Shown here in pieces: positions 48,847 to 54,697 of a stretch of 64,000 nt of DNA. The stretch spans positions 1 to 64,000 of the forward strand of contig MU626261.1 of the NCBI GenBank assembly GCA_025603075.1. Reading direction: 5' to 3'. The stretch is from Neoconidiobolus thromboides FSU 785 (Eukaryota; Fungi; Entomophthoromycota). Positions within the stretch are counted from its first letter, which is position 1, and every line of letters begins with the position of its first letter. The position numbers and the translations under genes were made by a program. The notes beneath the pieces are model-generated. The model ran no database searches and had not been told where the DNA came from. It saw nothing but the letters and a program-made list of their open reading frames with translations.

Positions 48847-48888
48847 TTTTAGGTAAAATAAAAGATTATCCACCAGGCTCATGATTTA

Positions 48889-48962
48889 CGCTCATAACTG
48901 GGATCGAACCAGTAACCTCCCGATTAACAGTCGGACGCGCTAGCCAATTGCGCCATACGAGC
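48889..48962 (-). tRNA. tRNA-Asn (GTT), intronless, 74 nt
   Basis: GCTCGTA/TATGAGC acceptor stem, TGGCGCAATTGG A-box, anticodon arm TCCGA-CTGTTAA-TCGGG, GGTTCGATCC B-box. Confidence 0.95.
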
Positions 48963-49008
48963 GCTCAAATTTTTCTTATTTTTCACAAGAGTTAAAAAAC
49001 ATAGCACC

Positions 49009-49098: not shown

Positions 49099-49771
49099 TA
49101 ATATAAAGCTTAATATTAGTTTATAATAAAATAATGATAATAATTTGTTGCACTTTTTTGCCATTTTCTACTGTTTGATGATTATTCACCCTTAATTTAT
49201 ATATTGAGGCATTAAGATATTTAATTTTAATTTTGATTTTAATTTTAATTCAATCAACTTATCCTCAAAGATATTATAATTCTTTGATCAATTTTTGAAA
49301 CACTTTTTATTGAATTGGACTAATTACGAATTGTGTATATCACACAAAATTAAATATATCGTAAAATACGAAGCGATAAAGCAGATGTATTAGATTGGAT
49401 TTTCATCTTTAAATGAATTTATCTACGATATATAAGCTTTTCTGGACTATTAAATAATTTTAATTTTAATAAACTATATTTTAGTCATGACGCATCCGCC
49501 AACAAATTAGTTTTTTAAAGAATAAAATCCAGTCACACCAACTAGATAATGAGGTAAGTTTAGCCAGAACACTAAAATGAGGCGGAAGGAAAATAAGAAC
49601 CAATAAAAAAAGCAACTACCATGCTATAGTATGCAACCATTGGCTATTTAACAGAAATTAAGCGATTTATTTTTGGATAGTTACAAAAAGTATGATGATG
49701 AGTTTTAATATATGATAAATAAAAATTTTAAATATAGCTAATTTGTTTTTCTGCTAAATATTTGAAGGAAA

Positions 49772-51612
49772 ATGAAATTTGCTAAACAATTAGCCTTAAG
49801 GTCAATACCCACTTGGGCTATTTATTATATCGATTATAAACTTTTAAAAAAAGCAATTAAAGAGTATGAGGTCACTTATAATGGTAAGCTAAATTTAATA
49901 TGCTTATATGCCTTATTCTAATATATGATAAAGATAGCGTTAAAAGCGATGAAGTAAAAGACGATTTGATGAATGAGTTCAAAGAGCTTTTATTAGAAGA
50001 ACTAAATAAAGTAGATGATAGATATAAAGTAAAAGAAAATGAATTGAGAGAAAGACTAAATAGCTTAAAGAGTATTGTAAGACTATTTTTATACATTTTA
50101 TTTGTAGTATTAAAATATTTGGTAGTGGAGCGATGAAATGACTCAGAATGAAACAAATAGATGGTAGGAAATTCATTTTATTTTAAAAAAATAAATAACA
50201 ATTTACTAGGCGACAAGATTTTTCAAAACTGTTGCAACAATTAGAATATTTATTTGGTAATTATTTCAATTATTTAAAGTCATATTAATGTTTAGAGTTT
50301 ACTAATACAAATATCACTGGATTTCAAAAAATATTGAAAAAATTCGATAAGCATATTGATACCAATATAAGAGAAGATTGGTGGCCATTAGTTACTAATT
50401 GTTCCTTCGTTGCTAGTGAAAAAGATGAAAGTATGTTGTTTGAGGCTAAACAGGTTTGGAGAACTCATGTCCCGCCTGCACCATTAGCTCCGACGGAAGA
50501 TATCCATCCAGTTGAGCCCGTGGTTCCTACTGTAACTAACTTAGATTTAGATGCTTTACCAGGTGACAGGATCTCAAGGCTTTGGGTAGTAGTTGCTGAA
50601 GATGGTTTATCACTTCCGATTAAAGTTCCAGTTATTGTAGCCAAAGTGAGTTTGCAATTTAAATATTAAATATACCATATTGAATTATTTCTTAGGGTGT
50701 AAAACCTGGTCCAGTTTTAGGTATTACCGCAGCATTACATGGAAATGAATTAAATGGAATTCCTTTAATACATCGATTATTTCGTGAAATTAAAACGTCC
50801 AATTTACATGGAATCATTGTCGCTGTTCCAGTAGCAAATGTTCCAGGCTATTTAACAAGTCAGAGAACTTATGATGGGCAAGATTTAAATAGGTTAATGC
50901 CAGGGTAAAATATACTTAATACTTATGGGTTGGTCACTTACATCATTTAATTAGAAAAAAGAACGGATCTAGGCCACAAGTGTACTCTTATAATTTGATG
51001 GACCGAATAATAAATAAAATTGAGTATTTACTCGATTTACATACAGCATCACGAGGAAGAGTTAATAGTTTATATGTTAGAGCTAACATGATGGATTCAA
51101 AAACCAGAAATATGGCACAATTACAAAACCCTCAGATTATTGTACATAATACTTCTCCAGATGGTTCACTTAGAGGAGCAGCTATGGAATTAGGGATACC
51201 AGCAATTACTGTAGAAATTGGAGATCCTTCTAGATTCCAAAAAAGATTTATAAGATCAGCATTGATGGGAGTAAGTAATATCATGTCGCATTTGCAAATG
51301 ATTAACGAAGATGGTAATTTAACGCCATCCGAATATGCACCAGTAATATGTGCTAAGTCTTATTGGATTTTTGCATCTAGGGGAGGCATTTTAACTGTAC
51401 TTCCAGATGTTAATACATGGGTTAAAAAGAATGAACCGATTGCTACATTACACAATATCTTTGGTAACCTTGAAGAAACATATTTCGCACCAGAAGATGG
51501 CATTGTTGTGGGTAAAAATGTGGATCCAGTTTGTCAATCTGGTAACAGAATTCTTCATCTTGGTGTAGTCAATTCTGAGTTTCCAACTGTTTCCAATGAT
51601 GGTCATTTATAA
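49772..51612 (+). CDS. SPX-domain / succinylglutamate desuccinylase-aspartoacylase (AstE/AspA, peptidase M14-like) fusion; 7 exons (49772-49883, 49934-50076, 50126-50163, 50210-50256, 50296-50645, 50696-50904, 50955-51612), 518 aa
   Basis: Exons total 1557 nt in one frame with GT-AG introns. N-terminal SPX: MKFAKQL...IPTW...YIDYKLLKKAIK and FTNTNITGFQKILKKFDK. C-terminal M14: ITAALHGNELNG, QDLNRLMPG, LLDLHTAS, ITVEIG, plus a lipoyl-like tail (APEDGIVVG). Confidence 0.88.
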
Positions 51613-51862
51613 TATTATGATACATACTTTTAATTTTTAATGTGTTGTTAGAAGTGGATTTTTAACCACCCATTTATGTCATATTATTCTAACCATTAAA
51701 TATACTACTCTTTTTGAGTTCTCTTTAATAAATTATTAATTTTTTGAAAAATGTTTTATATTATAACAGTAAAATCAAGTTCAAAAACAAACCAAATTAT
51801 AACTATAAAATTAATACTATATATATTTATCTTTAAATTAAAAGCTTGCACTTCATTTACAA

Positions 51863-51969
51863 TATGCGGGTGTTTTTTTTAACTTCATTACTTTTTCCAT
51901 CTTTTAATCACTATCTGAATGAAAAAACTTTTAGTAAAATTCTTAAACACAAAAATACATCCTCCCATA
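51863..51969 (-). mobile_element. MITE-like copy between the SPX fusion gene and SPE3
   Basis: TATGCGGGTGTTTTTTTT...AAAAATACATCCTCCCATA. Confidence 0.8.
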
Positions 51970-52510
51970 CAAGAGTATCTTGTTTATTTCAGTAACTTGT
52001 TAGTATTTTCTAGATTTTATGCTATGTAGAAAATGAAAAAATGAAAAATCATTCCCATATTTTTGATTTTTAGTCTACTATTCTTGATAAAAAATCCATG
52101 ACTTAGGAATATCTTTTAAATTCAGCATTTTGTACGCTTTGTATGCAACATAGAATCAAGTGAAAGCATTAGTTAAATGTCGAAACAAAAGGATGCTTGT
52201 ATATAATGTCACTTTGTATTACTATCATTGTTAATTTTATTTTACTAAAATTCTTTTCAGAAATCATTTCCTCACTAAATTTATAGCTTGCCAATTTTCT
52301 GAAATAAATGCGGAGCTGTATAACTCCTAAATTAGTGGAAAGGCACATTATTTTAAAATAGCTAATAAAACAACAGGATTCTTTTTAAAGCCAATGAAAA
52401 CCGAAATATAAAAAAACAAAATAAAATTTGTACAAAGTTGACAAGTTAAAAGAAAATAGTTTTTCAAAATAAGATACTTGCACTTTATCAATACGATAAT
52501 ATCAAAAAAA

Positions 52511-53618
<1,108 letters not shown>

Positions 53619-54697
53619 TTATAGATTTCCCTTTAAGATAAAATCATGATATGAAAATAGATTTAAAAATGTTAACTATTTATTGTGTTAAATTAATGTT
53701 TTTGTATTTTATTTCGATTTTAATTTTTATATCAAATGAAGCATATCAATACATTTTAGCTAATTATAGTATCTTACGTGCACTTTATTTTACTATATAG
53801 ATACCATTTTTTACTTTGAAACAAGTATACTTAACCACACAACATAATAAGTTACTGCTTTTGAGAGTGATTTTCATAGATAAACTCAAAATATCCATCT
53901 TAAGATTTTTGTTTTGCCTTAGGATAAAGTAATTTTTAAAATGGGTCATTATTTCTAAAAGTAGATACTTCTAGTTAAGACGCTTCTATTGATATATCAT
54001 CAAACACGGGTGTTGTTTCTAAGGATAGTCTTTAAAATTTTATATTTTTTCAAAAATACACCCCAGATTAAAGGATTTAAAATAGTAATACTGGTGGAAG
54101 TTAGATGACCTGGTAATAGTGAGTGACTATTATCAACCTCTTCGCTAAGACTTTTATTTAAGTGTCAATTAGACTAAATAAACTTGGCTTCATTCGCTAC
54201 AAGGATTCAGCCCTTCTAACAGTAATACAGTTATCAAATTTAAAGCCTCAAACTTTAAGAAAGTTATATCCAAATTAAAATTTTAAGCTTATACTAAAAT
54301 TTTAAGCTCCACCGATTGCTAGTTCTTTTGTAGTTTTAAAAAATTAAAGATTCATTATAAATAAAATTCTAATATGAAGTAAAGAATAATGTATGAATTC
54401 ATTGATAAGTAAGGGGGTTTCATTTTTTTTGTGGTTTACGCTTAGTTAATGTAATAACCATCTTGTTTCAAATCGTAAGGCTCATTATATCATACACGAT
54501 CATATAAAGGATATAGATGATTTCAAACGTATATACAACAATGTAAATGTAATTAGCCTTTATAAAAAAGGAAGCTTATCCAAAATCCTTCAAAGTTCAA
54601 TAGTATAAACCTAAGTCAGTTTCATATATGCCCTATACTACTAATTTCAAGATATTAACGTTTTAAAAAATATAGTATTACATATTAAGAAAATATT

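Follow-up and report, generated by a model that had tools for sequence, protein, structure and literature searches.

The window analysed here is a stretch of 64,000 nucleotides from contig MU626261.1 (positions 1 to 64,000; assembly GCA_025603075.1) of the fungus Neoconidiobolus thromboides FSU 785. This DNA is AT-rich (27% G+C) and eukaryotic, with very short introns. Among its genes is one, referred to below as the SPX-deacylase gene (Table 1), whose product unites an N-terminal SPX domain with a C-terminal zinc hydrolase of the AstE/AspA type. We regard this anatomy, one gene that encodes both SPX and a zinc hydrolase, as very nearly certain. Proteins built in this manner constitute a real, conserved and uncharacterised family, whose members may be amidohydrolases that respond to inositol pyrophosphates (PP-InsPs).

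The joined exons form a coding sequence of 1557 nucleotides that specifies 518 amino acids and a stop codon, and an in-frame TGA is located 9 nucleotides 5′ of the ATG. All six introns begin with GT and end with AG, are 39-50 nucleotides long and contain 15-26% G+C. Transcript evidence is provided by public RNA-derived contigs from three runs (X1, X2 and X3) belonging to two studies. A contig from run X1 spans the whole gene and has all six modelled introns removed exactly, while runs X2 and X3, which come from the second study, include five of the six joints and have loose contig ends at 50164 and 50209 that match the sixth. Given that intronless contigs cannot derive from genomic DNA, these records represent one mature transcript. 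The original prediction, made from the letters of the sequence alone, that seven exons splice into one 518-residue frame is therefore supported at all six joints by RNA contigs from two studies, and the RNA reveals one transcript rather than two genes. Furthermore, exon 5 by itself is a single open frame that contains the final SPX helix together with the initial strands of the hydrolase, and because this exon carries parts of both domains the fusion is independent of any splice between them.

The X1 contig extends 437 nucleotides 5′ of the ATG (49335-49771), a region where read depth in runs X2 and X3 is almost nil and from which it climbs only near 49770. The usual 5′ end of the transcript is probably near the ATG, and the upstream extent in X1 may reflect either a second, more distal start site or read-through, in a single sample. 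Along all 518 amino acids, the spliced model shows 100% identity to the GenBank entry ‘hypothetical protein K502DRAFT_362010’ of N. thromboides FSU 785, and thus the gene model already exists in the deposited annotation. The earlier notion that the fusion was hidden has to be abandoned, given this exact entry and the presence of both Pfam tags on more than 90 relatives.

The N-terminal half bears the expected marks of an SPX domain. The whole protein matches the Pfam SPX profile (PF03105) with 71.1 bits, compared with a gathering cut-off of 27.8, and the exons, when compared with this profile one at a time, cover its N-terminal, middle and C-terminal portions. A phmmer comparison of the SPX half with the SPX structures of human XPR1 and fungal Vtc4 gives a best E value of 2e-10. 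The AlphaFold2 (AF2) model places helices at residues 3-10, 13-18, 22-38, 43-85, 92-134, 138-147 and 156-171, all with a predicted local distance difference test score (pLDDT) above 90, and this arrangement corresponds to a predicted all-helical SPX fold with two long core helices.

The Tyr and Lys residues that contact the ligand were reportedly defined for the SPX domains of Vtc4 and XPR1 by Wild et al. in 2016. Tyr22, Lys26 and the four lysines at positions 125, 128, 129 and 132 occupy these known inositol-polyphosphate (InsP)-binding positions. Both motifs that drew attention to the domain at the outset, YIDYKLLKK with Tyr22 and Lys26 and the lysine-rich GFQKILKKFDK, are present and align with XPR1. 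When 44 fused proteins from fungi, Rhizaria, Amoebozoa and one alveolate cluster were scored at these sites, Tyr22 was found in 38 and Lys26 in 41, and the four helix 4 lysines were kept in 40-43. The SPX domain is complete, with an intact predicted surface for binding InsP or PP-InsP.

The C-terminal module matches Pfam AstE_AspA_cat (PF24827) with 117.4 bits against a cut-off of 25, and therefore both domains proposed for the protein exceed their Pfam thresholds. The motifs HGNE, DLHT, DLNR and VEIG were all recognized correctly in the original prediction, and the zinc-binding and catalytic residues that they contain are invariant in the 56 aligned sequences. His329 is followed by the equally invariant Arg335, Asn337, Tyr340 and Arg342, at a place where the sequence of DoeB is different, and two of these residues belong to a set of four invariant arginines (positions 287, 335, 342 and 373). 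The family-wide conservation of this catalytic set and of the SPX ligand residues indicates that both halves are under selection for function. In one respect the domain boundaries had been misjudged, as a stretch taken to be linker consists of the N-terminal strands of the hydrolase, which are homologous to bacterial proteins.

The AF2 model, computed from the 56-sequence alignment, has a mean pLDDT of 92.7 and a predicted template modelling score (pTM) of 0.65. It is all-helical from residue 3 to 171, passes through a disordered proline-rich linker and is of mixed alpha/beta structure from 191 to 518. Thus, the structural modelling that had been recommended yields two confident domains but does not fix their mutual placement. 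Foldseek identifies as nearest folds 3na6, DoeB (6twm and 6twl), 3cdx and 2qj8, with E values of about 1e-25, template modelling (TM) scores of about 0.8 by target length and about 20% identity. These are followed by 3fmc, 3lwu and the cyanophycin-dipeptide hydrolase CphZ. True M14 carboxypeptidases exhibit only a distant fold likeness (TM 0.3-0.4), and the Pfam profile for M14 carboxypeptidases proper (PF00246) gives no match at E <= 0.01. The hydrolase had been described as an M14 enzyme, and what endures of this description is an AstE/AspA-type protein with the full catalytic set, now assigned to a DoeB-like branch rather than to the M14 carboxypeptidases.

DoeB (also EutE), an N-alpha-acetyl-L-2,4-diaminobutyrate deacetylase, has the same two-lobed AstE/AspA fold as the module examined here, as do the unassigned structures 3na6, 3cdx and 2qj8, and all share the HxxE...H zinc ligands, an NR motif and a catalytic Glu. 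On the basis of the model and of these motifs, the SPX-linked module is predicted to adopt a DoeB-like AstE/AspA fold in which no zinc-binding or catalytic residue is missing. However, DoeB has its own sequence at the position of the pocket motif RGRVNSLYVR and lacks both the SPX domain and the C-terminal tail described below. Aspartoacylase (ASPA) and the succinylglutamate desuccinylase AstE belong to the same Pfam family and employ the same catalytic chemistry, but they are more distant, with TM scores to AstE structures of about 0.55. A relative from Smittium culicis (P0163) is named ‘N-alpha-acetyl-L-2,4-diaminobutyric acid deacetylase’ in both GenBank and UniProt. This name is probably an over-annotation, as the family scores far under the DoeB cut-off.

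Nearly all SPX-fused proteins also share a conserved C-terminus. Approximately 14 residues past a LHLG(V/I)V motif, the chain reads (D/N)DGH and then stops after zero to two further residues, giving endings of the type DGH(L/M/T/K). This tail is present in none of the bacterial homologues and is replaced in proteins where the hydrolase is fused to HutD. Because its occurrence tracks that of SPX, the tail is a candidate part of a switch, and its role may be that of a docking site or of a plug that mimics the substrate. A terminal pseudo-substrate is one idea prompted by the fact that this enzyme family recognises free carboxylates.

Table 1. Coordinates of the SPX-deacylase gene, its parts and other features discussed in the text. 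Positions refer to the window, except for the bacterial cassette, where they refer to the individual loci.
Feature	Coordinates	Strand	Remarks
SPX-deacylase gene, whole	49772-51612	+	7 exons and 6 introns, 518 aa; K502DRAFT_362010 (entry P0164)
Exons of SPX-deacylase gene	49772-49883, 49934-50076, 50126-50163, 50210-50256, 50296-50645, 50696-50904, 50955-51612	+	
Spliced RNA contig, run X1	49335-51899	+	2281 nt
SPX domain	49772-50468	+	aa 1-171, six helices, exons 1-5; Pfam SPX, AF2 helices, phmmer to XPR1 and Vtc4 SPX structures
YKLLK (Tyr22-Lys26), predicted phosphate-binding cluster	49835-49849	+	aligned with XPR1 YIQYEAFK
KILKKFDK (Lys125/128/129/132), lysine surface cluster	50328-50351	+	helix 4; aligned with XPR1 KILKKHDK
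Pro-rich linker	50469-50525	+	19 residues, aa 172-190; only low-confidence stretch, pLDDT <50 at 176-186
AstE/AspA-family zinc amidohydrolase module, bacterial-type	50526-51609	+	aa 191-518; same length as stand-alone bacterial enzymes
HGNE, predicted zinc ligands His245 and Glu248	50738-50749	+	invariant in 56 of 56; aligned with HGDE of 3cdx, 3na6 and 6twl
DLNR, Asp293-Arg296	50882-50893	+	D, L and N invariant; R in 54 of 56
His329 of DLHT, predicted third zinc ligand	51040-51042	+	followed by subfamily-specific RGRVNSLYVR
Glu387 of VEIG, predicted catalytic glutamate	51214-51216	+	invariant in 56 of 56; aligned with TELG of 3na6 and 6twl
C-terminal DGHL tail	51598-51609	+	in about 39 of 43 SPX-fused proteins
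Spermidine synthase gene	52478-53650	+	Spermine_synt_N and Spermine_synth; about 900 bp downstream, same strand
tRNA-Asn (GTT)	48888-48963	-	about 800 bp upstream of the SPX-deacylase gene
Bacterial three-gene cassette	L008:3506-6966; L034:3523-6957; about 35 further loci		Saprospiraceae, Myxococcota, Planctomycetota, Bdellovibrionota

A search of the full library with exon 7 recovered many long proteins that carry the hydrolase at the C-terminus, most of which have a Pfam SPX domain at the other end. Among the 120 cluster representatives listed, more than 90 carry both Pfam domains. Carriers of the fusion are found in Kickxellomycotina (Coemansia, Linderina, Ramicandelaber and Smittium), in Mortierellomycotina and Glomeromycotina (Geosiphon and Ambispora), in Entomophthoromycotina (Basidiobolus and Massospora), in many chytrids (including Synchytrium and Chytridium) and in Taphrinomycotina (Saitoella and Pneumocystis). 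The protists Plasmodiophora, Spongospora and Balamuthia also carry it, and a further, dinoflagellate cluster holds a fragment from Symbiodinium. The survey of proteomes that the original prediction called for therefore finds an architecture that recurs in early fungi and in several protist groups. The relatives are labelled ‘hypothetical’ or ‘SPX domain-containing protein’. The architecture is not known from the SPX proteins of Saccharomyces cerevisiae and Schizosaccharomyces pombe, which are well catalogued, and its absence from baker’s and fission yeast would explain why it has never been studied. The original prediction knew of no described fusion of SPX with an M14-type enzyme, and our full-text literature search likewise found no description of SPX joined to an AstE/AspA-type hydrolase. 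The sole other SPX-hydrolase fusion to surface in the literature is an unrelated S28 protease-permease protein of Onygena.

The hydrolase module has close counterparts in bacteria. Residues 190-518, including the N-terminal strands, align end to end with stand-alone proteins of approximately 330 amino acids from Saprospiraceae, Myxococcota, Planctomycetota and Bdellovibrionota, with 50-56% identity and the same invariant residues. These bacterial ‘predicted deacylases’ differ in lacking an N-terminal sensor and the DGH tail. In a maximum-likelihood tree of 110 hydrolase modules (LG+G4), computed by a short search with the Shimodaira-Hasegawa-like approximate likelihood-ratio test (SH-aLRT) as its only measure of support, all eukaryotic rows form one clade (SH-aLRT 99) nested among bacterial rows, although such a tree does not establish the root or the direction of transfer. 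The fungal part broadly tracks taxonomy. The protein is shown to belong to an old, vertically inherited eukaryotic family, and the pattern fits one ancient acquisition of a bacterial-type gene that would have been followed by fusion to SPX.

Four proteins in which HutD (PF05962) is joined to AstE_AspA_cat (P0024, P0270, P0029 and P0032) group together with full support, nested within the SPX clade. Their sources include Absidia (Mucoromycota) and a chytrid, and an Atlas cluster contains 72 HutD-hydrolase proteins, all from Mucoromycota. These fusions likewise place an accessory domain at the N-terminus of the same hydrolase clade, but the domain is HutD instead of SPX and the tail reads KKxGExLPKEAKENY instead of DGH. 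From its position in the tree, this subclade seems to have exchanged its N-terminal accessory domain, SPX, for HutD. HutD is a cupin linked to small molecules, and has been implicated in preventing the build-up of formylglutamate during histidine catabolism in Pseudomonas (PMC8034625). Such a swap fits both an N-terminal sensor that controls the enzyme and a substrate of the N-acyl-Glu type.

Further hints come from the genomic surroundings of the bacterial relatives. Among 80 bacterial loci, two genes on the same strand most often precede the deacylase gene, mostly directly adjacent, and form with it a three-gene cassette (Table 1). The first encodes an ATP-grasp-like protein of approximately 485 amino acids (40 of the 80 loci, with a median gap of about 400 bp), and the second a GshB/RimK-like ATP-grasp ligase (PF02955) of approximately 335 amino acids (37 loci, with a median overlap of 6 bp). 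The larger partner finds no sequence match in Pfam, NCBIfam or PDB; the Atlas groups it with ATP-grasp and GshA-like folds. The location of the bacterial relatives beside amide-forming ligases suggests that the hydrolase undoes an amide bond made by an ATP-grasp enzyme.

A different context for the deacylase gene was observed at seven loci from Phaeodactylibacter and its relatives (L010, L011, L017, L018, L026, L043 and L058). The gene order here is response regulator, 2-oxoglutarate-Fe(II) oxygenase, SET-domain protein, deacylase and a large protein of the alpha-amylase family, with a GNAT plus CN-hydrolase gene upstream on the opposite strand.

An SPX sensor attached to an output domain is a familiar arrangement, as exemplified by yeast Gde1 (SPX plus a glycerophosphodiester phosphodiesterase), VTC, Pho81, Pho87/90/91, XPR1/Syg1 and the SPX-RING proteins. 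The SPX-deacylase follows the logic of Gde1 and the other fused effectors in having an N-terminal SPX on a catalytic or transport output. However, known SPX outputs almost all handle phosphate, by polyphosphate synthesis, transport, breakdown of glycerophosphodiesters or regulation of the PHO system, whereas the output in the present case is a zinc amidohydrolase for which no phosphate-containing substrate is evident.

We propose with moderate confidence that the protein is a cytosolic deacylase, namely a zinc amidohydrolase gated by PP-InsP. It would be a soluble enzyme of two modules, the SPX domain and the hydrolase, connected by the proline-rich linker. AstE, aspartoacylase, DoeB and CphZ act on free amino acids that bear an acyl or aminoacyl substituent on the alpha-amino group, and remove this substituent. 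By analogy, the substrate of the hydrolase may be an N-acyl or peptidyl amino acid, possibly one made by an ATP-grasp ligase, in which the amide to be cleaved neighbours a free carboxylate. Both the link to HutD and the invariant arginines point to a probable acidic substrate of the Glu/Asp type. Binding of InsP7 or InsP8 to SPX, which would report phosphate and ATP status, may then switch activity by altering how SPX touches the catalytic module. The family-wide conservation of the SPX ligand residues strengthens the case for such a phosphate switch.

Several observations weigh against this proposal or against extending it to a particular substrate. With a pTM of only 0.65, the placement of SPX on the hydrolase is not fixed by the model. 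The solved relatives share only about 20% identity with the module, which precludes transfer of their substrates, and the same conclusion follows from the scores against equivalog models for DoeB (TIGR02994; 66.2 bits versus a cut-off of 402.7), aspartoacylase (NF002601; 29.8 versus 180) and AstE (TIGR03242; 21 versus 305.65). Neighbouring genes are not conserved among the eukaryotes. Regarding the bacterial ligases, the Atlas contains a cluster with a fold near-identical to that of the 485-residue partner that is 86% eukaryotic, mostly Mucoromycota, but the best 120 matches of a sequence search with this partner include only records that are named bacterial or are nameless. A eukaryotic counterpart of this ligase is consequently an Atlas lead that sequence does not confirm, and the GshB-like ligase has no eukaryotic cluster in the Atlas.

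In a bolder version of the same proposal, the SPX-deacylase would be the PP-InsP-gated breakdown arm of a ligase/hydrolase cycle derived from bacteria. This cycle would act on an amide compound or protein tag, made by one or two ATP-grasp ligases and probably containing Glu, which the SPX enzyme would remove in response to phosphate and ATP status, with the DGH tail serving as an autoinhibitory pseudo-substrate. We offer this scheme as a speculation that is unlikely to be correct in full.

Alternatively, SPX could leave catalysis unregulated and serve as a scaffold for a deacylase that is always active, either by localising the enzyme, for instance to other SPX-binding partners or to the polyphosphate machinery, or by causing it to oligomerise. 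The variable length of the linker (about 20 residues here, more than 200 in Mortierellomycotina) and the lack of a confident interface in the AF2 model, as reflected in its pTM, are compatible with this role, and contacts between SPX domains are known in VTC (PMC10167327). Nevertheless, the retention of the Tyr/Lys set throughout the family points to selection for ligand binding beyond what the fold demands, and the tail motif linked to SPX is situated on the catalytic module. We therefore consider a pure scaffold to be improbable, albeit worth keeping in mind.

The substrate might instead be the tail of a protein or peptide, from which the hydrolase trims Glu-type residues, C-terminal or on side chains, that were added by an ATP-grasp ligase, with SPX tying this modification to phosphate status. 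There is precedent in the cytosolic carboxypeptidases (CCPs), which oppose the tubulin tyrosine ligase-like enzymes, and a hydrolase would likewise oppose RimK. The operons that join bacterial relatives with a RimK/GshB-like and a second ATP-grasp-like ligase agree with this possibility, as does a distant fold kinship to the CCP5 deglutamylase and MpaA (Foldseek ranks 34-42). Yet the characterised members that are nearest in fold (DoeB, AstE, aspartoacylase and CphZ) are known for acting on small molecules, the Pfam M14 profile is not matched, and TM scores to the CCPs are only about 0.3. On balance, we view trimming of a peptide tail as a doubtful prospect.

Very unlikely, in our judgement, is a reversal of roles in which the hydrolase is the sensor and SPX the output, such that occupancy by substrate or product alters the binding of SPX to, for example, a transcription factor. 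Stand-alone SPX proteins do work by binding partners, as with plant SPX1 and PHR1, but a complete and invariant catalytic set is what a working enzyme typically shows, in contrast to a module that only binds, and the ancestors in bacteria are simply enzymes. Finally, the idea that the fusion is an artefact of annotation or assembly joining two adjacent genes, which no observation favours, is hardly tenable when a single RNA contig crosses all seven exons, its joints recur in two studies, exon 5 holds parts of both domains in one frame and the same architecture is present in more than 90 proteins from many phyla.

Regarding the remainder of the locus, a spermidine synthase gene follows the SPX-deacylase gene and a tRNA gene precedes it (Table 1). 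A functional link with spermidine synthase was considered and rejected, as this gene is not located beside the orthologues in Basidiobolus, Linderina, Plasmodiophora and Entomortierella. A 31-nucleotide repeat occurs in 15 copies in the window, compared with zero expected by chance. One copy resides at 51932-51962, and others are found at, for example, 2748, 5694, 6091, 6622, 6797, 41543, 46136 and 60810. The repeat looks like the end of a dispersed element resembling a miniature inverted-repeat transposable element. The former copy, which lies immediately beyond the transcript on its 3′ side, accounts for a roughly ten-fold spike in depth and for many loose ends of RNA contigs at this place.

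Although we found no description of it in the literature, the SPX-deacylase architecture is plainly visible in sequence databases. The bacterial cassette offers a practical route to the substrate, and the HutD swap and the DGH tail are concrete leads for the design of mutants. The carriers include organisms with an unusual phosphate economy or with ecological or medical weight, such as relatives of the arbuscular mycorrhizal fungi, Mortierella, Pneumocystis, the clubroot agent Plasmodiophora, Balamuthia and the Symbiodinium cluster. The conserved fusion suggests that phosphate signalling controls a step of amide or amino-acid metabolism in these lineages. If this is true, the reach of inositol-pyrophosphate signalling would be extended to amide or amino-acid metabolism, and if a ligase/hydrolase cycle also proves to be real, early fungi, plasmodiophorids, amoebae and dinoflagellates would possess a new metabolite or modification that PP-InsPs control.

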